A stretch of DNA of 64,000 bases from Salpingoeca rosetta (GCA_033442325.1 JAWQFM010000020.1:747233-811232); one strand, 5' to 3'; numbered from the stretch's first letter, positions 1-46,197 are shown. The notes: generated by a model from the sequence alone, not told the origin. Numbers and translations are program-made.

Positions 1-2055
1 CGAACACAACACAACACAACACAACTCCAACACATTTCAACACAACACAACTCAACACAAACACAACACAACACAACACAAACACACACACACTCACACA
101 GAGAGAGGCATGTGACTGACGTTGAGGTGGATGAACTGGAGGATGCGCTTGTGGGTGAGGATGGAGATTGCGTTGCCCGTGTACGAGTCAATCACGGGCA
201 GGCGGTGGATGCGATACTCAAGCAGCATCGTCAGCGCCTCAAGCACGCTGGGGAGGTGGGGGTGAGGTGAGGGGTGGTGTGTTAAGGGTGAGATTGGGGA
301 TGATAACATGGTGGTGTGGTGGAGTGATGGCACGCTTGGAATATGAGACGCAGGTCCACATGCGACCACATGCGCACGGCAACGCATATAACTACACACC
401 TGAGTGAAGGGTCCATGCACGCGAGTGTGTGCGGTCGCTTATCACTCGACATGTCTGATACAGGCAGGGAAGAACGCAGCCAATGTGGATCAAGTATTAA
501 CGAATGAGAAGCGCACAGTCGTGCATTGCACACACCCTTATGCAACAAACACACACACATACAACACATACAACACGCCACAACACATTCAACACGCCAC
601 AACCCCAACACACCACAACACATTCAACACGCCACAACCCCAACACACCACAACACATTACAACATACCCCCTCCACACCCAACCCCCCCCCCCAAACAA
701 AACATCAGGTTGGAGCACGGACCGCGCCACGTCTGGATCCTGTGCTCCTCAAGCTCCTCCATCTTGCTGTCGGGGGAGACGTAGTACTTGAGCAGGATGT
801 TGATGAAGTCGGTCACCGTCAACATGCCCACAAACTGCTGCTTGCGCGAGTCCCACAGCGGCGCTGAGCGGATCTGATTCTGCACCAGCGCAAAGAACGC
901 CTTCTTCACCTGTGCACAGCAAGAGGAAGAAAGGGGGGGTATGGGGTTGCGCGGGGTTGTGTGCGAATGTGCATGTGTGAGTGCACAAATGTGCATGTGT
1001 GTGCATGTGTGTGCATGTGTAAGTGCGCGCATTTGTGTGTGTGTGTGAGGCAACAGCAGAAAACGAACAGCACAACACGGCTGGGCAGGTTAACAAACAA
1101 CACGCAACAGCAGCAGAGGCAAGCAGCACCAAGCAGCACCAGCACATGTGTCAGCTGCAACGCACGTGCAGTTGTGTATCGAGGACGACCATCTTCACGC
1201 TCACGGGCATCATATCGTAGCACGTGAACCGGCTCAGAAACCGCCTGGCGCAATTGCCGTGTTGATGGCGGTGGTGGTGGTGGTGGTGGTGATGGTGGTG
1301 AAGTGAGGTGAGGAGGGAAAGCAGAGCAAGGCTTGATCAAAGGTACGGACACACACACACACACACCGACACGCACACAAGACATGAGCCATGTTGCGTA
1401 TCGTGGCAGTGCTGGCAGACCTGATGGCGTCCTGCTCTTCTTCAACGGTGGTGCCCGCCGCTGAACTGCGGGGAGGATACACGCACACGCATGCACACGC
1501 ATGCACACGCATGCACACGCGGCGTGAGGATGACAGGCTTGTGCACTGGAGCCCACACGCAAACACATGCAAACACACACGCACACATACAAACACACAC
1601 AAACACACACACACACACAAATATACACGTACAAACACACACAAATATACACGCACACGTACAAACACACAAATACACACAAACACACGCACAAATACAC
1701 ACGCACACAAACAAGCACAGCACATACGACTACAGAAGCACACAAAACCACACACAGGTACAGCGCTTTACTGCACTGTCTCTTACAGGGACTCGCTGGA
1801 GATGTTCTGTGATCGTGTTTGCGACGGCGTCGGTGACGTCGCCAAGGATGATCTCTGCATTGAGTACAATCCCGTGGACGCACACACATGAACAAACATG
1901 GGGCAGGGCGTGGCATCAGCGTACGTTGATTTGCTTCTGTGGCGGATGAAACACACACACACACACTCTCTCTCTCTCCCACTCTCTCACGCAAACACGC
2001 AAACACGCAAACACGCAAACACGCAAACACACACGCACACACGCAAGCACACGCA

Positions 2056-2116
<61 letters not shown>

Positions 2117-2813
2117 AGCTGCTGTGGTGCGCATGACATACGTCGCTGCCGTTGGCGGGAAGGGTGGCAGACGGCGCCCCCAGGGACGAGCTCGCCGTTG
2201 CAGCCACATCGCGTGGCTGCGGCCGCGATTTCGACGGCGTGTACGAGTGCTTGGTCATGGTGAGCTGTTCCTCCTTCTGGCGGGGCCGGCCGGAGAACAG
2301 CGGGCCATCCTGGAGCGGTTCACTGTCCACCAGCCGCGTCTCACTGCTCGTGCTGTCTGTTCGGGATCGCTGCGGCGTTCCGTCTGCATCCGAGGAGCCT
2401 CGCAGGAAGTGCCCATCGTTCAGCATCTGCCGCAGCGTAAGCACGGAGGGAGATGGTGGTGGCACGCGCGGTGGTTGTGGTGGTGACGACAGACGCGTTG
2501 ACAGGGGCAATAACAACGACGGTGGCGGTGGCGTGAATGAAGACGATGTCCGCGTTGATGAAGATGACGTTGTCGACGTGGTTGCAGAGGATTTGGAGGA
2601 CGAGGATGAGGCAGAGAACCGGGAGGCAGGGCCAGTCGTGGTGGGGGTGGCGGTTTTCGTCATCGTCGACACCGTTGTCGCAGTCGAAGAGGGTCGAGCG
2701 GACGGTTTCGCAGAAGATGACGGTGGGCGCGTGGCACCATGATCGCAGGAGAACCACATGATTGATTGTCAGCTCAAGCAAGTGGGATCAGCAAACACAA
2801 GCAGCAAATGGCT

Positions 2814-2844
<31 letters not shown>

Positions 2845-2997
2845 CAAGACAGAGCCTCTGCCAAGGAAGGCAAGAGCACAATGCGCACAACAAACGAGTA
2901 TTCTTCACCGTGTGCCTTCACATCGCATCAGACTGACTGACCTGCACCGCATTTGTTGTTGGTACTTGATATTGCCGCGGTGGCTGCGGCTGCTGCG

Positions 2998-3028
<31 letters not shown>

Positions 3029-3040
3029 ATGATGTGACAT
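1..3040 (-). CDS. PRKAG: AMP-activated protein kinase gamma subunit (CBS domains), multi-exon, 3' end beyond window start
   Basis: Exons encode [23 protein letters not shown] (~1165-1235), [43 protein letters not shown] (~725-910) and [26 protein letters not shown] (~120-249), which are hallmark AMPK-gamma CBS1-2 sequences. Long S/T/P-rich N-terminus (~2140-2750). The start at 3040 (MSHHQQQQ) is tentative. Confidence 0.92.
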
Positions 3041-3364
3041 GGCGAGCGAGCTGGGCAGCTCCACCAACACAAACGCAGACACAAAGACAGGAGACAGAAG
3101 ACAAAGACAAGGAAAGACAAAGCACAATCGAACAGGCCCCCTCTGTTCCTCTGGTCTTGTTCTTGTGTTCAAGCTGTTGTGTGTCAACTCGGTGGAGCGA
3201 GTGAGGAGAGGAGAGGTCAGGAGCTGAAGATCTGCCGTGGCGTGGGGTGTGTGTTGTCGTTCTTGCTGGCTGCAGTTGCAAATTGCTGCCCTGATGGACG
3301 GTGTAGATGATTTGTGAACATCTTCCACACCTTCACGTTCATCTTCTGCAATTGGCAAATAGCC

Positions 3365-3371
3365 TGGCAAC
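3365..3371 (-). promoter_or_regulatory. Candidate RFX (X-box half-site) motif GTTGCCA upstream of DRC10
   Basis: TGGCAAC on + strand, ~360 bp before the DRC10 ATG. Confidence 0.45.
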
Positions 3372-3732
3372 AAGCAAGCAGCCAACAGCAAAGACGAAGA
3401 ACACAGCAGCACAACAGCACACACCATCAACTATCGCTCACCCGACCAGCACCACCCACCTGCCTGCGTGCCCTGAGCACGCCTTGACCTCCAGCGCGCT
3501 CGCTCTCTCGCTCTCTCTCTCTCTCTCAACAGCCCGGGCTTCTTTGTGACAGCACCCTTTTCTCTTTCCTTGTTTGTTGCGTTGGTTCTTTACACAACAC
3601 AACACAACACAACACAACACAACACAACACAACACAACACACACACACACACATTCACATTCATACACCCCACAAGCACACACATAACCCCACCCCCAGA
3701 AGCACACACATAACCCCACCCCCAGACGCAAC

Positions 3733-4503: not shown

Positions 4504-5101
4504 AATGTGTGCGTGTGCGTGTAAACCATTTCTGTTGTGCTGCTGTGCCAATTCCTGATACCGTCTGGCAATATGTGCGACGCGCGTATAGGATGATTTG
4601 GACTTTATCGCTCACAGCGCCGCAGAACACAGCAGGCAAACCCTGCGCGAGGCCAGGCGCAAGTACGTTGCTGTTGTGCCGTGTGTGTGTCTGTCTGTCT
4701 GTGTCTCTGTGTCTGTGTGTGTCTGTGTCTGTGTGTGCCCTTGTTGCCACATTGTCTTGCGCACTCTCATGTTTGCGCCACGTCATTCTCATTCACGCAC
4801 ACGCACACATCCACCTGCACACATGTTCACACTTGCTTGGTCCAGGCAAGACCATCACGAGCACACGATGAACACGGACGGCAAACAGCTCAACGAGCAG
4901 CTGGACAAGCTGGAAAAGGTGACGACGATGACGACGATGATAGTGATGATGACGATGATGGTGATGGTGATGATGCTGGTGGTGAGAAGGAGTGAAGATA
5001 TTGTTCATATGTGTGTGTTTTCGCAAGTCATTCCCTCCCTCCTCCCACTTGCCTTCAACACTCACCCCACTCGCCACATGCCTGCTCCCAAACGCTTCTA
5101 A

Positions 5102-5133
<32 letters not shown>

Positions 5134-5835
5134 GCTCGCATCAGGAGCTTGCGAGCATGAGGAAGAAGCACAAGGACGAGGAAACAAAGCTGCGCAAGCG
5201 AAAGCTGAAGCTGCAGGCGCAGATAGAGGGGTGGATCATGAAGTACGACCAGGACATGGGCGAGAAGCAACGCGAACTCGACGGTATTCAGCAGCAATAT
5301 GGCGCAGAGTCGAAGCAGCTGCAGGAGCTGGAGGAACGGTTCAACGTGCTTGAGATTGAGTACAATCGCATTATGGAGGAGAGGCGAGCGGAGCGCGAGT
5401 ACAAGCAGCAGGCGGAGGAAGAGATGCAGAAGATGATACGCGCTGCCCTGCTCATCCAGTCCTGTTGGAAGGCATACAAGTCCCGCAAGGTACGGTGACT
5501 TCTTGGCGGGGGGGGGGCTGGGGGATTGTTGTGTGTTTTGTGTTATGTGTGTTGTGTATGCATGCACTTGTTTGTGTGTGGGTGTGGGTGTGGGTGTGGG
5601 TGGGTGCGTTTGTGGGTGGGTTTGCGTGTGTGGGTGCGTGGGTGCGTGGGTGCGTGGGTGCGTGGGTGCGTGGGTGTGTACGCAGGCCTGTGTGGTCTTC
5701 TGAGTGCGTCTCTGTGTGCGTTCCGCCATTGTACTCACTCTCCATCATGTGTGCGCCCATCCCACGTGTGGTCACCAGGCCGCACGAAAGGCGGCTGCCA
5801 AGAAGAACAAGAAGAAGGGAAAGAAGAAGAAGTAA
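3733..5835 (+). CDS. DRC10: Dynein regulatory complex subunit 10 / IQ motif-containing protein D
   Basis: Coiled-coil protein with [27 protein letters not shown] and an IQ motif ([16 protein letters not shown]), ending in a Lys-rich tail [11 protein letters not shown] (5779-5835), as in IQCD/DRC10. GT-AG introns, e.g. 4351 and 5490. Confidence 0.85.
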
Positions 5836-6154
5836 GGAACGTCCACATGCAACGAAGACAACTTGTTTTCGCTGTTGTCGCTGTACTTTTTCTCTGCTCT
5901 TCGTCCTGTTACAAAGCATCGCAGAGAGAGCGGGAGGGAGAGGGAGGGAGAGACGAGGGAAGGAGGATAAGGAGGGGAGTGCTGTTGTGGCTCGTGTCGG
6001 TGCGTGTGCAGAGGTGTCTTGTCTTGTTGGATATGAATGCCGGTGCGCGTTTGTCCCATGCCAGTGCCACAGCGCCACACAGCGCAAACGCCTCTTGCCT
6101 TGCTTGCCTTGCTGAATTTTGTAGCATATCTTTCATAAACTCTCCAGGTGCGTT

Positions 6155-6165
6155 GTTGCCAAGAC
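6155..6165 (+). promoter_or_regulatory. Candidate RFX motif GTTGCCA(AGAC) upstream of EFHC1
   Basis: GTTGCCA ~250 bp before the EFHC1 ATG; a second TGGCAAC at 6475-6481 in intron 1. Confidence 0.5.
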
Positions 6166-6409
6166 GATTGTCATTTCCACACACACACTCCATCAAACCA
6201 ACAACACCACAACACCACACCCGAAGCAACCCCAGGTCTGTGGATGTGTGTGCATGTGCATGTGTGTGCGTTTGCTAATGCCCTCCTGGTTGTGTGCCTC
6301 CTCTTCCTCCCCTCACTCCTCTCGTTTCCTCTCGTATGCTTGTGTACTGTATTATTCATACGTCATTGTCTCCTGTGCCGCTCGCTGCAGACAGCAATCA
6401 CAGCACACC

Positions 6410-8262
6410 ATGTCAAGTGTCAAGAAAACAGCGCCGCTGCTGCCTGGTTTCACCTTCCAGGATCCCACGGTTGGTGGCAACAATGAGCAGCGTGTGTCAC
6501 CTGCTCCTTGTCAACTCGCACCAGTGCTGCAAACATCACAAACATGGAACACCAACACGCGCGCGTGTCCTCTCGCATACAAGCTTGCACGCTCCCATGC
6601 ACTCACACACTCACACACACACATGCACTCACACTCACACTCACACACACGCACACACACGCACACGCGCACACGCAAATGCACACGCAAACGCACACGC
6701 CCCGTTCAGCAAACGCGGTTCCCACGATCCCAAACGCTGTCCAAGACAGCAGGCCGTGGTGATGATGCAGAAGAGGTGAGCGAGGACGACCTGCGCCGGC
6801 TGCAGGAGCAAACAAAGCGCCTTGCCTTCCAGACCACCACACGCAGAGAAACAGAGAAGGCCGCATTGCCCATTCGAACCCCAGCACACATCCCAGCCTA
6901 CGTCGCTCTTGACAAGAAGGTGCAACACACTCCCCCTCCTGCAGTGTTGCATCAAACATGGCATCATCATGTCATGTCGCTGTTGCCTTCAACCGTGATG
7001 TCGTGTATTTCATGTTGTCCATCCATTTCGTCAGACACACACACACACGCACATGCACGCACACGAAACAATGCATCGTCGCGTGTGAGCCCATCGAGCC
7101 TCACTCTGCTTGCACCTCCATGTCGCTGCTCAGGTCCTGACATTTGATGGCTACTTCAAGGAAACGGTCACAGAGTCTGCGGAGGAGCACTTCCGCGTGC
7201 GCCGCGTCAAGGTCGGTGGTCTTGATGCCACTGGGCTCTGCATCTGATGCTGATGAGTTGAACACCTCCAGCTGTGAAGCTGCTCTTCCTCACCCTTCCG
7301 TGTCGTCCACCTCCCATCACGTCCACATGCACCTGAGACGGTCGTCATGCGCTGCTGCTCAGTCTCACATTTACACACATGAACACACGTTCATTCACAT
7401 TTACACACATGCACACACACGCACACACGCACATACACGTACGTATACATTCACACACGTTCACTTTCTATTGCCTCTGCCTTGCTGACGCCTTTCTTCC
7501 CCTTCCTCAACCCCTCCAATCTCGACCATCCGCGCGCGCCATTGCACCGCGTACTCAGATCTACTACCATCTTGAGGATGACACCATGTCTGTGCTCGAG
7601 CCCCCCGTCCCCAACAGCGGTCTCCCCCAGGGCAAGCTCATTCGTCGCCAGCGCCTGCCCAAGGACGCGCGCGGCAACACGTGGTCGTGGAAGGACCTGA
7701 ACGTCGGCATGAACCTCCCCATCTACGGCCGCGTCTTCCGCGTCACAGACTGCGACGCCTTCACAAAGGTGTGTGTGTGTGTGTGTCTGTGTGTGTGTGT
7801 GTGTGGTGCGCCTGTGTGTGTGTGTGTTGTGTGTCTGTGTGTCTGTGTGTGTATGTGTGTGTGTGTGTGTGTGTGCAGGTAAGCTTACCTCGAACTGTGG
7901 TTCATTTCCTTCAGCTTCTTCTAACACTCGCACTTGCCCCATGTCACTCCCTTCCCTTACCCCACCCTCTCACCTCCCGCCACCACAAACAACCACGCCC
8001 CCCCCCCCTTCGCAGGAATTCCTTCTGTCCAACGGCATTGAGCTGAATGCGACGGAGCAAGTGCCGGAGGACCCGTACACGGTGAAGCGCAAGGTTGTGG
8101 AGCAGCCGTCCACGCTGGCCACCACCAAGAGCGACTTTGACAAGCTGAAGCAGTTTATTGAGCTCGATCGAAAGGTGCTGCGCTTCTACTGCGTATGGGA
8201 CGACCGCGCAAACCTCTACGGCGAACTCAGGCCCTTTGTGAGTATGACACACGCTGTGCGGC

Positions 8263-38568: not shown

Positions 38569-38812
38569 TCATGGGCAGAAGAGGGGAATGCCGTACCAGT
38601 CGTTTGGACGCAGGTAGTGGAAGTTGCGGTCAAGAGCCGCAATCTTCTGCATGTCCTCCTCATCCAACTCAAAACCCACAGACTCGATGTTCTGGTCACA
38701 GCGCAGTTGCGTGTTGTTGTTGGAAGTGAGGCCGGGCGAGGAGATGCAAGGGGAAGGGGCTTACACAGCACAGGCACAACGCGATAAGCCGTCGAGGAGT
38801 GCAGCACATTGG

Positions 38813-38864
<52 letters not shown>

Positions 38865-39018
38865 GGCGGATGCGGTGGTCGTGCGTGGACTTTGGAATGA
38901 CGACGGTCCCGCGCTGCACCGCCCAGCGAATGCACACCTGCACAGAAGGGGAGGTGGTGGTCGCGTTTGTGGTTGGTGGTGGTGGATGAGAAACAACGCA
39001 AAGTGGTGCAAACGCGCG

Positions 39019-39077
<59 letters not shown>

Positions 39078-40604
39078 CACGCACCTGGGCGGGGGTCTTG
39101 CCGTGCTTGGCAGCAATGGCGGCGAGGACGGGGTCCTGCAGGAGAACATCGCCGCCCGTCCAGCTGTGGTTGGAGCCTGTGCCCAGTGGCGAATACGCGG
39201 TCATGGCAATGCCGAGGCGCCTGGCGTACTCGCACAGCGCGGGCTGCTGGCAGTACGGGTGCATCTCGTTCTGGATCACGGCGGGCTTGATCTTGGCGTA
39301 TGTCATGATGTCGTGGACAATGATGGCAGGGACGTTGCTCAGCCCAATATGCTTGACGAGGCCTGCCTCCACGCACGCCTCCATCGCCTCCCACGTCTCG
39401 CGGATGGAGACGCTGTGGTCGACCTTTGCTGCGCCCGGGTTGGCCGCCTGTGTCACCTCCTGCAGCTCGCTCAGGCCGTCTGGGTCATACGTCTCGTGGA
39501 AGCCGCGCTTCGTGCCGTCATAGGGCACGTACTTGAACGCCACGGGCCAGTGCATCAGCCACAGGTCTTGGGCGAGCAGGTGGTGAGGGTGGGGAAGGTG
39601 GAATTGGGGCAGGAAGGCCGTGTGGGAGGTGCAATGAGTGGGAGGCACAGGTAGGCACGAGCGGGGCACGAGGTGACCAGCGGGTGAGAGGGGAGAACAC
39701 ACGGACACACACGCGCAGGCATACACGGACGTGCGCGCGTACGTGGACACGCACAGGCATACACGTACGCACGCGCGTACGTGGACACACACAAACAAAC
39801 ACACACACAAACAAGCAAGCAAGCAAACTCACCGAGATGGTCGAGGCGGAGGTCGAGCAGCGTCTTCTTGAGGTGTGGCATGACGTGTTCCTTGTGGTGG
39901 TACGGGTTGTTCAGTTTGCCGGTGATCCACAGGTCTTCGCGCTTCACCGCGCCACTCTCAAACAGCTCCGCCAGCGCATCCCCAATCTCATCTGTGTTGC
40001 GGGTGACCCAGCGGGGCATGTGAAGCGGGGACACACCAGTGGGGAGGGGGGTCATGAGTACGAATGACTGTATGAAAGGGGGGTCAGTGTCGCAGAAGAA
40101 AGGAATAGAAACAGAGTTGCGTCGGGAGTGTCGCACAACACACACGCACATACACACACATGTACACACATACACGCACACACATACACACACATGTACA
40201 CACATACACACACGCACACACATACACACATTCACGCACATATACACACACACAAGCAGTCACAGCAAGATCGACCTTCGTTGAGGTAGTTGCTGGCGCA
40301 GTCGAGGTGCCTGTATCCGCACTCGGTCACAGCATATTTGACAGCAGCGCCAACCTTGCCCTTCTCGGCCTTCCAGGTGCCTAGCCCAACCTGCACATGA
40401 TTGCCGTCGATAAATTATACAGTACACGACAACAACACGACAACGACAGGATGGATGGCGTGGTCAGAGAAAGTGTGGTGCTGCAGTGCGTCGTCACATG
40501 TCGCATTCCTCTCGTGCAGTGAGGAAGGGCTGTGGTGTCACCCACCAGCGCACCTGAGGAAAGGATGCACCAGAGTGCAGCTTGATGACAGGCACAGCGC
40601 TCAT
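38569..40604 (-). CDS. Aldo-keto reductase (NADPH-dependent)
   Basis: [21 protein letters not shown] (Asp/Tyr), ITGKL (Lys), LMHWPVAF (His), [39 protein letters not shown]. The catalytic tetrad is intact. Confidence 0.96.
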
Positions 40605-40772: not shown

Positions 40773-41240
40773 ATGGCCGACGGCAATGATGAGCACCGCC
40801 TGACGGACGGCGTGTCTGTGGAGGCGGTCAAGACCTTCCTCGCAGACCTGACGAAGGAGTTCCCCGACACTTACACCGAAATGACCACGGAGGATGCCTG
40901 CAAGCAGCTCGTGGTGCCACGCACACGCCAGGACAACTGCGCCTACGTCGACCTCTTGCGCAAGCAGTCATCACATGAACACGTGAACAAGGCCACTGTG
41001 TTTGTGTCGCACGCGTGGCGATACAAGATCGCAGACGTGCTCAACGTGCTGCTGGAGTTTGCAGAGGAGCAAAGAGCAAGCAAGGAAGACGGCCAGCCCG
41101 TGTTCTTCTGGTTTGACCTCTTCATGAACAACCAAAACGCCAATGTCACCGCCAACCTCCCACAAGAGTGGTACGTCTATGTGTGTGTGTGTGTGTGTAT
41201 GTGTGTATGTGTGTGTGTGTGTGTGCGTGTGTGTGTGTGT

Positions 41241-41277
<37 letters not shown>

Positions 41278-42982
41278 CGTGTGTGTGTGTGCAGCTGTGT
41301 GTGGTTTGGTAGTGCAATGTTTCTTGCACACGCCCTCACACGCACTCTCCTCTCACACGCCCTCTCCTCTCCTCTTCCCCCCCCCACCACACAACAGGTG
41401 GAGCACGACGTTCAAGGAGTCGATTGCCAACATTGGGCGCGTGCTGTTGGTGTTGATGCCGTGGCGTGACCCCGTTCCACTGACGCGCGCGTGGTGCCTG
41501 TGGGAAATCTTCTGCGGCATCAGCAACGAGGGCACAGAGGTCACCATCCGCCTGCCCAACAGCGAGGAGAAGGCGCTGGAAGAGGCCATCCGCGGCGACT
41601 TTGAGGCAGTGACCGACACGCTGGTGCGCGTGCAGGCAGAGCGGGCAGAGGCCTTCAACCCGCGCGACAAGGACATGATCTTCGAGGCCATCCAGCACGG
41701 GGTTGGCTTTGCGGCTCTCAACCAGGCTGTGAAGGACCAGCTGCGCGCGTGGTGCCTGGAGAAGGCGGTAGCTGCGGTGGAGGCCATGCGAGCACAGGGT
41801 GAAGATGAGACAGAGGCCTTCGCGGGGTTGTGTCTCAACGTTGGGCTGGTGCTGAAGGAGTATGGCGAGCACGATGGCGCAATCACGTGCTTCAAGGCAG
41901 CCCTGCCGATTTTCCTGCGAACCGAAGGGGAGAAGGGAGAGAACGTGGCGGGGTTGTACCACAACCTCGGCATCGCGTACCACAGCAAGGGCGACTACGA
42001 CAGGGCCATTGAGCTGTATGAGAAGGCCCTCACCGTCTTCGTGGAGACGCTGGGTGAGAAGCACCCGAGTACAGCCACGTCGTACCTCGGCCTTGGCAAT
42101 GCATACGACAGCAAAGGCGAGCACGACAGGGCGATTGCATGTTTCGAGAAGGCCCTCGGCATCCAGGTCGAGACATTGGGTGAGAAGCACCCGAGCATAG
42201 CGGATTCGTACCTGGGCCTTGGCATCGCCTATCGCAGCAAAGGCGACTTCGACAAGGCCATCCACTTCTACGAGAAGGCCCTTGCCATCAAGGTAGAGGC
42301 GCTGGGTAAGAAGCACCCGAGTACAGCCACGTCGTGCAACAACCTTGGTGAAGCATGCTACAGCAAGGGCGACTACGACAGGGCGATTGCATGTTACGAG
42401 AAGGCCCTCGCCATCCAGGTCGAGACATTGGGTGAGAAGCACCCGGCAACAGCGGTAACGCTCGTCAACATTGGCCGGGTGCACAACCAAACGGGTGGCA
42501 ACGAGCGGGCCTGCGCTTACATGCAACAGGCGCTCGCCATCGAGGTGGAGGCGTTGGGCGAGAAGCACCCAAGCACAGCAAACACTTGCATCAATCTCGG
42601 CTTTGTCTACGCCAGCAAGGGCGAGTACGACAAGGCCATCCGCTACTACGAGAAGGCGCTCGCCATCCGGGTGGAGACGTTGGGCGAGAAGCACCCGACC
42701 ACAGCCACGTCGTACTTCACTCTCGGCCTGCTGCACGACGAGCGTGGCAACAAGGAGCGGGCCTGCGCTTGCATCCAACACGCGCTCGACGTTCGCACAG
42801 CCATCCTCGGGCCAGACCACCCCAGCACACGCAAGGCGGAGCGCGAACTGCAGCGCATTCGCGGCGGTGATTCCAAGACAAAACAGGACTGGGTACTGTT
42901 TGCAGTCTGCTGCCCGTGCATCCTTGCGGCTGCGCCATTTTTCTGCATGTACCACTGCGCAAAGCAGGTGTGTACGAAATGA
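40773..42982 (+). CDS. TIR/HET-like N-terminal domain + 42-aa TPR array + Cys-rich hydrophobic tail
   Basis: Exons ~40773-41170 and ~41399-42982. Domain motifs VFVSHAW, FFWFDLF, TFKESIANIGRVLLVL and LTRAWCLWEIF, then about 8 kinesin-light-chain-type repeats (LGEKHPSTATSYxxLGxAYxSKGDYDRAIxxYEKALAI). Confidence 0.9.
41810..42860 (+). repeat. Coding tandem repeat, 126-bp unit (TPR array)
   Basis: Recurring gggtgagaagcacccgag/ggcgagaagcaccc at 126-nt spacing (e.g. ~42052, 42178, 42304, 42430, 42556, 42682). Confidence 0.9.
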
Positions 42983-43230: not shown

Positions 43231-43429
43231 GTGTGCATGTGTGTGTGATGTGAAATGATGCACGTGTGCTGTGGGCTCCTTCATTGTTCGCTGACTTGCT
43301 TGATTGGAGGAGCGTTTACTGGGCGTGGATGCCGCAATGAGCAAGCTGAACGAGGCCATGCCATGCGCCATGCCATGTCATGTCAAGTGACAGCGCACGA
43401 GCAATGAAGGGGGGGGGGGGTTATGGGTG

Positions 43430-43644
43430 CTAGTCCGCAGAGGGGAGGGCCTGGCGGTATGTCGTTCGCGAGATGGACAGGGTCTTGTGCAGTCGTCGGT
43501 CGGGTACAGCTTCCACAGCACGTGCCTTTCAGTTTGCATGTCGTGCGTGTCCGTGATGGGTACGTGATGTGGTGAGGGCGAGGGCGTGGCCGAGGGTGGG
43601 GACGGCAGGTGTTATCATACACACACACACATACACACACACAG

Positions 43645-43680
<36 letters not shown>

Positions 43681-45792
43681 CAGCGCCCAAACCTGGTGGA
43701 GGAGGGACTTGAGCTTCTGTGCGGCGAGGAGGAGCTTCTTGCGGTGGCCCGGCCGCGAAATGCCAAGGCAGTCCAAGTCATCCTGTGTCAGGTCGCACAC
43801 CACGTCCAAATCGTCGTACCCTTTGGACATGAACATGTCCGCATACGCCTCCAGCCGCAGCGCGCTCAGCCACGCCCGCACCGCCTCTTGCAGTCGCAAC
43901 TGCATATGTGTGTGTGTGGGTGTGTGTGGGTGTGTGTGGGAGCACAAAACATGCACGACAAAGCAACAATACGGCAGAAATACGAGCATGAAGAGCACGC
44001 TCCCTTCATGCAGCCCCCGTGCGCGCTTGCTTGTTTGCTTGTGTGGTCCATCTTACGTTGAGAAATGCGTACTTGACCTGCTGCCTCGGGGTGAGCTGCT
44101 GCTGCTCGTCTTCTTCTTCGTCGTTATCATCATCGGCCTCGCTCTCCGGCTCTGACGGGGTCCCGAAAGGTGTGTTTGAGTGAGTGAGTGAGTGTGTGAG
44201 TGAGTTTGAGTGTAGAGAGGGTGTGTGAGTGTTTGAGTGAGTTTGAGTGTGGAGAGTGTGTTAGTGAGTGAGTGAGTGAGTGAGTGAGTGAGTGAGTGAG
44301 TGAGTGAGTGAGTGAGTGAGTGAGTGAGTGACCATTTTGTTTCATTTGTTCGTTGGTTGTTGTTTTGCTTAAACTGTTTGTTGCTGTAGATCATAGCACA
44401 TACTTACACACGGACAACCAGCACAGCAACTTCGCACCTGTGTCGCCACCGGGAGTTTCTTCGGCGTCGTTGCCTGCAGGGAAGCTCGCCTCACTCAGCG
44501 GCTTATCCTACACACGAAAAACACGCCAACATGCAAAATCAACGGGAGGGAGCAGAGGGTGAAAGGATGCCAAAACACGATCACAAGCATGCACACAACA
44601 TACACACACACACACACACACACCACAAAACCAGACAGAGCATACACGCACCCTGCGTTTGCTGCGCTTGTGTGGATGCGGATCAATGGCACCCAGTGCA
44701 TGTGTGATGTGGTCATGGTGGTCGTGCGCGGTGCGCTTCTCACCCCGACCGCCCTGATCGCCACCAGCTGTTGCTGTTGCTGCTGCATGTGTGTGTCCGT
44801 GTCCGGGTGCGTGCGTGTGTACGGCTGAGGGCGCCTGGTTCCGCGCAGCGCTCGATGACAACACGGCCGCCGCCGCCGACGACGACGACGATGGTGGCGG
44901 CGACGACGACGACGCCACAGTGGCGTCCAGCCCTTCCACAAGGTGGTGCAGGATGGCGTAGTGGGTGCGCCCTTGCACCAGCAGCGTGTGGATCTTGTTG
45001 TCGTCCTGCATCGACACTGTCGGCTCTGTCGGCGGCTTCTTCTGAGGGGTTGTATTGTGTGGCGTTGTATTGTGTGGCGTTGTATTGTGTGGCGTTGTAT
45101 TGTGTGGCGTTGTGTGGTGTGGCGTTGTTGTTGGTGGTGCAATCACGAACAAACACAACTCCAAATGGCCATAAAGCTGTGCCCACAAACGCACACACAC
45201 ACACAACACACACAACACACAACACACACACACACAAATACACACAACACGCACACACGCACACACACACACACGCACCTTTTTCCTGCCGCGCTTCTTG
45301 CCAATGTCGCCCCTGAGCCGCTTCTCGGCAGCGCCACGATCACGACCGGGGCACGCGCACACGCGCGTGTCGATGCTGTCGCAGCCAAGGATGCGGCTGC
45401 TGTGCTCGAGGGAGACAGTGACCTCAAAGGGGCGCCGGTTCAGCCCGCCCGGGCACGACGAGAAGCACAGCAGCTCAATGTAGAACACATGCGTGCCTGC
45501 AGGCAACGACAGCGTGTGAGGAGCAGTGAGAACAACAGCACGTGCCAACGACAACTGCGATGAGGCAAAACGCAGTCATAACGACCAACCCACAACCAAC
45601 AACCAACCAACAACTCACGCCTGGGCACAACCAACCCCAACACACCATTCTGTGCAGCGCATCTGTCAAAGGGGATGCGGATGGAATAGTGGCCCGTGGC
45701 GTCCTTCTCGTACACGGCCTCGGGCATGTCGCACCGTACCAGGTGGTACGCGTGCATGCCATCGGCCCCTGTGCAGAAGTGTGCGCGCGCGC

Positions 45793-45872
<80 letters not shown>

Positions 45873-46197
45873 AATGTGTATCTGTTTGATATTCTAACTT
45901 CCAAAAAGCAAGGATCTACTGACGGTGGGTAACAAGGGTAGTGACCTCCATATCCTAGGTATTATTANNNNNNNNNNNNNNNNNNNNNNNNNNNNNNNNN
46001 NNNNNNNNNNNNNNNNNNNNNNNNNNNNNNNNNNNNNNNNNNNNNNNNNNNNNNNNNNNNNNNNNNNGCATGCACGTGTTTCTCGTTGCACTCTCAATCT
46101 TGTCGCTGGGTGGTTGTACGAGCGCATGTTGGGTTCCTGTCTACTCAAGAGATACACACACACATATGGTGAGTATGGCAAGTGGGTGTGGCAAGCG

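Follow-up and report, generated by a model that had tools for sequence, protein, structure and literature searches.

A TIR-like domain joined directly to a TPR array in a large gene family of the choanoflagellate Salpingoeca rosetta

Here we analyse a gene in a 64,000-nucleotide stretch of DNA from Salpingoeca rosetta (GCA_033442325.1 JAWQFM010000020.1:747233-811232; hereafter the window). The organism is a choanoflagellate and, as an earlier note made from the DNA alone had said of the host, a unicellular relative of animals. Reading the sequence and its spliced translation, we found that a two-exon gene on the plus strand encodes a 660-residue protein, P0001, whose N-terminal domain is very probably a divergent member of the TIR superfamily and is fused directly to an array of tetratricopeptide repeats (TPRs). 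The domain is placed in this superfamily because fold matches and a profile-profile alignment with controls agree. The earlier note had proposed a TIR or HET domain; the superfamily assignment stood, whereas membership of Pfam TIR, TIR_2 or HET at curated thresholds did not.

Results

Fold and homology of the N-terminal domain

The structure of the domain was predicted with AlphaFold2 from an alignment of 67 homologues that are 28-91% identical (alignment A1). The model reached a pLDDT of 93 and a pTM of 0.90, with pLDDT above 88 from residue 11, and contained strands at residues 76-79, 111-114, 147-151 and 180-184 with helices between them, followed by a helical C-terminal part (residues 187-265). 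The model and the structure searches made with it revealed the flavodoxin-like alpha/beta fold of TIR domains. In a Foldseek search against the PDB, the best five matches were plant TIR domains (RPP1, RPPT and SNC1; E 0.03-0.09, probability up to 0.85), the kind of structural match by which the earlier note had proposed to check its reading. When the best 1000 chains were re-ranked, the top 50 were almost all TIR domains, with most of each target covered. The lists of structural matches were made up nearly entirely of TIR, ThsB, SARM1 and deoxyribosyltransferase structures, not of generic flavodoxin, CheY or Rossmann folds. Structure searches of the ESM Atlas returned matches only from the same unannotated family, and a feature search of its named clusters gave nothing useful (score 0.76).

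Next to the fold stands a link at the sequence level. Using hhalign, we aligned A1 with a profile built from 20 alphaproteobacterial TIR_2 domains and obtained a score of 43.0 (P 6.2e-6, probability 85%, 86-131 columns), whereas controls consisting of one reversed and 20 column-shuffled TIR_2 alignments scored 9.7-19.6, with P of at least 0.03 and probability no higher than 1.6%. A cruder profile made from the TIR_2 loci of S. rosetta itself aligned in the same register in local mode (P 0.0013, probability 18%). In each alignment, F-V-S-H-A-W lies opposite the block of the first TIR_2 strand, F-W-F-D opposite that of the second, and R-A-W-C-L-W-E opposite the block whose last residue is the conserved TIR glutamate. 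The glutamate column of the TIR_2 profile is also the glutamate column in alignments to the solved TIR domains of AbTir, PdTIR and Cat1. Judged by sequence alignment, not by three-dimensional superposition, Glu169 of P0001 is equivalent to the glutamate at the catalytic TIR position, in agreement with the earlier note. This conserved glutamate is the catalytic residue of TIR NADases.

Curated models gave a different picture. Hidden Markov models (HMMs) of the TIR families, which make up the STIR clan with TIR (PF01582), TIR_2 (PF13676) and ThsB_TIR, did not match residues 1-290 of P0001 even at E-values up to 10, and residues 1 to about 265, scanned as separate exon products and as the spliced N-terminal domain, had no Pfam, NCBIfam or PADLOC match beyond noise. 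The A1 profile found nothing among PDB sequences at E up to 10. TIR_2 was the commonest weak Pfam match among the 67 homologues, in 4 of them and below threshold (best E 0.0057), and across the S. rosetta genome no TIR_2 match overlapped a locus of the family. By threshold, P0001 belongs to none of Pfam TIR, TIR_2 and HET.

Conserved motifs and the catalytic-position glutamate

All the motifs that the earlier note had read from the DNA occur in the spliced protein where it had placed them. The first-strand motif VFVSHAW (residues 76-82; 40998-41018, plus strand) aligns to the F-I-S-y-A-s block of TIR_2, and the Paracoccus TIR domain PdTIR (PDB 3h16) has F-I-S-H-A-W at this block. The second-strand motif FFWFDLFMNNQ (residues 111-121; 41103-41135, plus strand), which the note had quoted as FFWFDLF, contains the nearly invariant W113 and D115 and the invariant Q121. 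It is followed by TFKESIANIGRVLLVL at residues 137-152 and by LTRAWCLWEIF at residues 161-171. The codon of Glu169 within R-A-W-C-L-W-E is GAA at 41504-41506 (plus strand), exactly as the note had reported for its catalytic-position glutamate.

In A1, nine residues are invariant (F77, Q121, P158, R163, W165, C166, L167, E169 and I227), with Glu169 present in 67 of 67 homologues, and S79, H80, A81, W82, W113 and D115 are at least 90% conserved. The motifs exceed chance, since they are invariant or at least 90% conserved across 67 homologues. The conserved residues gather at three positions of the TIR active-site cleft: in the loop that follows the first strand, where the second strand ends and where the W-C-L-x-E helix starts.

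Relation to HET domains

The HET consensus of fungal cell-death proteins reads S-Y-x-W-G, W-I-D-x-x-C-I-N-Q and R-G-W-T-x-Q-E. The corresponding blocks of the P0001 family, S-H-x-W, W-x-D-x4-N-Q and R-x-W-x-L-x-E, appear to have the same spacing as this consensus of fungal HET (PF06985). The Pfam HET model itself matched neither P0001 nor any of the 67 homologues among the matches listed for them, and a six-frame search with this model gave 0 matches in the S. rosetta genome and also 0 in the control genomes, so that it carries no information either way. In one subfamily, fused to ankyrin repeats and found on contigs of up to 500 kb including one in an alphaproteobacterial metagenome-assembled genome (MAG), block 2 reads W-I-D-F-I-C-Y-N-Q-H, as in the bacterial homologue. 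Four of its 10 members had sub-threshold Pfam HET matches at the W-I-D..N-Q block (E 0.012-0.23). A word-based protein search from the bacterial homologue returned the ankyrin-fused subfamily only and no HET-annotated protein.

A distant relationship of HET to TIR has been shown by way of "three main conserved blocks" (Dyrka et al. 2014, PMC4986451), to which the blocks of the P0001 family appear to correspond. In the same work, HET homologues are reported from stramenopiles, haptophytes, choanoflagellates and green algae, and a figure includes one S. rosetta sequence (PMC4986451). We found the P0001 family in choanoflagellates, oomycetes, haptophytes, chlorophytes, chytrids, a labyrinthulomycete-like protist and an acoel, a spread that agrees with the published one. 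By its motif signature, the domain most resembles fungal HET domains and the TIRs of plants and bacteria, and the family lies between TIR_2 and HET, caught by neither model. Four other S. rosetta loci (L012, L014, L017 and L020) pass the TIR_2 cut-off and carry the HET-like blocks S-Y-S-W-G and C-W-I-D-I-R-N-I; they may be further TIR_2-HET intermediates.

Protein architecture

P0001 begins with a family-specific N-terminal extension (residues 1-65; 40773-40967, plus strand) in which G13, T39, P49 and T51 are conserved in the 67-homologue alignment. This extension lies outside the canonical TIR domain and occurs in the bacterial homologue too. The TIR-superfamily, HET-like core follows at residues 66-262 (40968-41785, plus strand, split by the intron), and the TPR array occupies residues 267-625 (41798-42874, plus strand). 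The repeats are of the kinesin-light-chain type (TPR_12/TPR_10), and Pfam matched them with TPR_12 in 8 stretches (E 2.1e-98) and with TPR_10 (E 1.7e-77). One degenerate unit, seven exact 42-residue units and a capping half-repeat make up the array. Its period is exactly 42 residues, and it is joined to the core through helices, so that the direct fusion to a TPR array described by the earlier note is confirmed.

The note had also seen no Walker A motif or nucleotide-binding oligomerization domain (NOD) between effector and repeats. A pattern search of the whole protein found no Walker A or P-loop pattern anywhere, library scans of the exon products and the spliced N-terminal domain found no match to NACHT, NB-ARC or AAA, and the AlphaFold2 model has only helices between the core and the TPRs. 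On these three grounds the description as NOD-less is correct. The protein is also not a kinesin light chain, because the resemblance is confined to the TPRs: the N-terminal heptad-repeat coiled coil by which kinesin light chain binds the heavy chain is absent, and the TIR-like domain stands at the N-terminus. The TPRs account for the name "kinesin light chain" on paralogues. A hydrophobic, Cys-rich stretch of 21 residues (631-651; 42890-42952, plus strand) lies within the last 31 residues and is probably a tail-anchor transmembrane helix or a palmitoylation patch, which would give the protein a membrane role.

A large paralogue family in S. rosetta

The earlier note had proposed to count paralogues and to ask whether they keep the glutamate. 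Our six-frame profile search of the whole genome, in which the copy count is a lower bound, gave 66 matches of the exon 2 type and about 60 of the exon 1 type, and thus at least 66 copies. Most copies break at the same position of the profile, which points to a conserved intron position. When all 66 exon 2 loci were read, the glutamate was kept in 65, 62 of the 66 having R-A-W-C-L-W-E and three having S, T or L at the second position. The sole loss is in a divergent copy (L109; C5:2281563-2282045, minus strand), which reads N-A-Q-C-L-W-D; it could be a decoy or have degenerated.

The N-terminal domains of close paralogues are 79-91% identical, and the number of TPRs varies between paralogues. 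Across 90 complete units, variability is confined to unit positions 10, 17, 20, 21, 31 and 39, with positions 13 and 30 intermediate and the rest nearly uniform. The TPRs of fungal NOD-like receptors (NLRs), which are reported to be similarly homogeneous and to have positively selected sites, resemble these 42-residue repeats with few hypervariable positions (PMC4986451). Family loci are enriched near contig ends: 25 of 65 (38%) lie within 100 kb of one, against 13% expected (p 3e-7); contig ends need not be telomeres, and assemblies can also break because of repeated genes. One contig, C25, holds nine copies. The genome also contains about 30 canonical TIR_2 loci above the cut-off. Family members and these loci lie within 30 kb of each other in 8 of 48 cases where 3.3 would be expected (P about 0.016). 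This weak co-location has no significance at distances of 10 and 50 kb and is probably a side effect of both lying near contig ends.

The C-termini of the paralogues examined (P0002-P0035), taken together with P0001, are of three main kinds: P0001, P0008 and P0016 have a hydrophobic Cys-rich tail, others have CaaX-like endings preceded by a second cysteine (CCSVL, CCSIL and CCTLI), and others again have a PH domain. Cys-rich hydrophobic tails, CaaX boxes and PH domains are membrane-targeting devices. Because all three classes are of this kind, the C-termini suggest that the family acts at the cytosolic face of membranes. One paralogue, P0029, has an N-terminal Erv26 match (E 9e-33) and may be a gene-model fusion.

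Beyond TPRs, the TIR-like domain is fused to ankyrin, LRR, EF-hand, HNOB, methyltransferase and DUF285 partners. This variety fits a regulated effector or enzyme module and is by itself no proof of immune function. In the alphaproteobacterial MAG, which has 14 TIR_2 matches genome-wide, an 8-kb contig (L045) carries a gene for a TIR_2-TPR protein of 661 residues (1405-3387, plus strand; TIR_2 E 1e-20). A homologue of the family lies directly downstream (4737-5936, plus strand; hhalign probability 99.1), followed by an ankyrin-repeat open reading frame (ORF) at 5782-6549 (plus strand). The arrangement may mean that a symbiont carries eukaryote-like genes or that the family arose in bacteria.

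Gene model, transcripts and neighbouring genes

Exon 1 (40773-41170, plus strand) starts at Met1 and ends two bases into the Trp133 codon. It is separated from exon 2 (41398-42982, plus strand, including the stop codon at 42980-42982) by a phase 2 intron of 227 nucleotides (41171-41397, plus strand) that has GT..AG borders, is rich in GT microsatellite and interrupts the TIR-like domain. The protein was identified when the translation of exon 2 was used in a word-based protein search, and the spliced product is 100% identical to P0001 (XP_004991398.1, EGD76484.1, UniProt F2UH85). Its database name, "tetratricopeptide TPR_2 repeat protein", bears out the remark of the earlier note that such proteins are annotated only by their TPRs. 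The note had described the motifs and layout well but missed the intron, the putative C-terminal membrane anchor and the size of the family.

Stranded RNA-seq covered both exons in the expected orientation, with no depth in the intron bins, part of the intron being skipped as repeat by the mapping. Loose read ends from two RNA-seq runs and one contig joined the end of exon 1 to position 41398. Most mapped reads were 95-99% identical to the gene, and several sites differed in all reads. Both features make cross-mapping from close paralogues likely, and for this reason expression is not assignable to the P0001 copy alone.

Upstream, on the minus strand at 38761-40253 of the window, ORF translations show an apparent aldo-keto reductase gene with several introns rich in GT/CA microsatellite. 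Directly downstream, also on the minus strand (43383-45554), is a p53-family-like gene: the signature R-V-C-A-C-P-G-R-D-R, known from the DNA-binding domain of p53, stands in one ORF, and a second ORF codes for a SAM-like domain. An assembly gap, a run of N, follows at about 45970-46070.

Discussion

Among known systems, P0001 works most like HET or TIR effector-plus-sensor proteins. As in fungal HET proteins, the domain is N-terminal and upstream of a variable recognition module, and it belongs to a large, variable, species-specific gene family; the P0001 family differs from them in its conserved 65-residue N-terminal extension, its helical C-terminal part and its predicted membrane anchors. 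The best structural matches to the domain are enzymatic TIRs (SARM1, RPP1, RUN1, AbTir, PdTIR, ThsB, Cat1 and SPARTA TIR-APAZ). The plant TIR motif S-x-W-C-L-x-E-L resembles the W-C-L-x-E helix start of P0001, and PdTIR resembles its F-x-S-H-A-W, whereas identity to these enzymes is below 20%, curated models give no match, P0001 has extra N- and C-terminal elements, and its catalysis is predicted. SARM1 combines a repeat sensor with a TIR domain and has no NOD; compared with it, P0001 has the reverse domain order and no SAM oligomeriser. The logic of effector plus repeat sensor is shared with NLR and STAND proteins (plant TNLs, fungal HET-NACHT-WD, NB-ARC-TPR and bacterial Avs). Lacking the NOD that defines NLRs, P0001 is not one of them, and any switch in it must work without nucleotide exchange. 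The bacterial protein DSR2, a SIR2 domain with a helical repeat sensor, is a single-chain NADase sensor without an NTPase. Like P0001, DSR2 and the bacterial TIR_2-TPR protein have a domain of NAD-consuming type fused directly to helical repeats with no STAND module, but DSR2 uses SIR2, the TIR_2-TPR protein carries a canonical TIR_2, and neither has membrane anchors or a 66-copy family.

The novelty claimed in the earlier note was overstated, since choanoflagellate HET homologues (PMC4986451), the NOD-less product Bh of the Podospora gene het-B, in which HET is joined to a lectin fold (PMC10890737), and the bacterial TIR_2-TPR protein precede it. Highly diverged, uncharacterised eukaryotic TIR clades have been reported as well (TIR atlas preprint, 10.64898/2026.04.30.722052); the family's motif did not turn up in the portion of the atlas table that was searched, a truncated copy.

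Starting from what the analysis shows, namely the gene model, the domain's fold and TIR homology, the conserved glutamate, the lack of a NOD, the size of the family and the pattern of repeat variability, we infer a working model in which catalysis, its substrate, activation by oligomerisation, membrane anchoring and a role in immunity or non-self recognition are all predictions. TIR NADases and nucleoside deoxyribosyltransferases both attack an N-glycosidic bond with a glutamate at this position. A Glu169-dependent N-glycosidase is the most likely activity, because the structural relatives use this glutamate and the conserved residues lie at the pocket loops. We give about even weight to the proposal that P0001 is a cytosolic, membrane-anchored protein whose TPR array controls such an enzyme, activated by clustering. 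The TPR solenoid would bind a ligand or hold the enzyme domain apart; ligand binding or crowding at the membrane would bring TIR-like domains together and complete an active site around Glu169; and the completed site would cleave NAD+ or a related nucleotide, which would deplete that nucleotide or yield a signalling molecule. With the membrane anchor, the local concentration of the enzyme would rise, and clustering would activate it as in other TIR enzymes. A complex prediction for two copies of residues 1-270 scored 0.00, which speaks neither for nor against self-association. Canonical TIR domains that produce cyclic ADP-ribose have been reported in S. rosetta (2026 preprint), which makes signalling by NAD-derived products of TIR domains plausible there. 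The recently expanded family of at least 66 copies, enriched near contig ends, fits a diversifying recognition repertoire.

A resemblance to TIR by convergence, in which an unrelated Rossmann-like three-layer fold matches these motifs by coincidence, is very improbable. The Z scores below 8, Foldseek E-values of 0.03-0.3, the lack of any HMM match at threshold and the 18% probability of the first hhalign run, with the S. rosetta TIR_2 profile, are in its favour. They are set against match lists that are nearly pure TIR, ThsB, SARM1 and deoxyribosyltransferase, the hhalign P of 6e-6 compared with at least 0.03 in all 21 controls, the alignment in register of three conserved blocks including the glutamate, and weak TIR_2 and HET matches that recur across subfamilies. 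We also regard it as unlikely that P0001 is a housekeeping or regulatory protein outside immunity, be it a nucleoside or nucleotide N-glycosidase or transferase in the manner of 2-deoxyribosyltransferase, a different small-molecule enzyme, or a cargo adaptor, placed on membranes for metabolism or trafficking by its kinesin-light-chain-type TPRs and its lipid, PH or tail anchors. It would be unusual for such an enzyme to have at least 66 paralogues that are nearly identical, differ in repeat number, carry hypervariable positions in the repeats and are enriched near contig ends; the link at the sequence level is to TIR_2 and not to deoxyribosyltransferases, and the coiled coil that binds kinesin heavy chain is missing.

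Similarly small is the chance that the domain acts without catalysis, as a membrane-anchored scaffold that recruits TIR- or HET-like proteins by homotypic contacts in the manner of TLR and MyD88, with the glutamate serving folding or an interaction surface. Exactly such a role for HET was proposed by Dyrka et al. 2014 (PMC4986451); the non-enzymatic TIR domains of MyD88, TIRAP/MAL, TRIF, IL-1RAcP and Hydra TRR-2 match P0001 at the same Z as enzymatic ones, and the paralogues and canonical TIR_2 loci offer many possible partners. The clustering of conserved residues at three positions that line the active-site cleft and the retention of the glutamate in 65 of 66 copies argue against it, and even the TIR domains of animal immunity are reported to keep catalysis (2026 preprint). 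The homodimer prediction lends the scaffold no support, though it is not evidence against binding.

Wider still is the idea that choanoflagellates, haptophytes, oomycetes, green algae and chytrids hold a large, fast-diversifying repertoire of membrane-anchored, NOD-less, single-chain receptors in which a hypervariable TPR, ankyrin or LRR array directly gates a TIR/HET-type N-glycosidase. We advance it tentatively, as a possibility with the odds against it; if true, it would reveal the long-sought biochemical activity of HET-type cell-death domains.

TIR domains connect the immunity of bacteria, plants and animals, and how the related HET death domain of fungi acts biochemically is a long-standing question. 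The P0001 family is a bridge between TIR and HET that curated models do not detect, and many copies of it occur in a sister group of animals that can be manipulated genetically. It keeps the catalytic-type glutamate and wires the domain directly to a diversifying TPR array and to what appear to be membrane anchors. If the domain is inactive, the family documents reuse of the TIR fold as a scaffold on a large scale. If it is active, the family would offer a simple system for the control of TIR/HET enzymes without an NTPase switch, would show what HET-type domains do, and would uncover an uncounted immune-like repertoire of choanoflagellates behind annotations as "TPR repeat protein".

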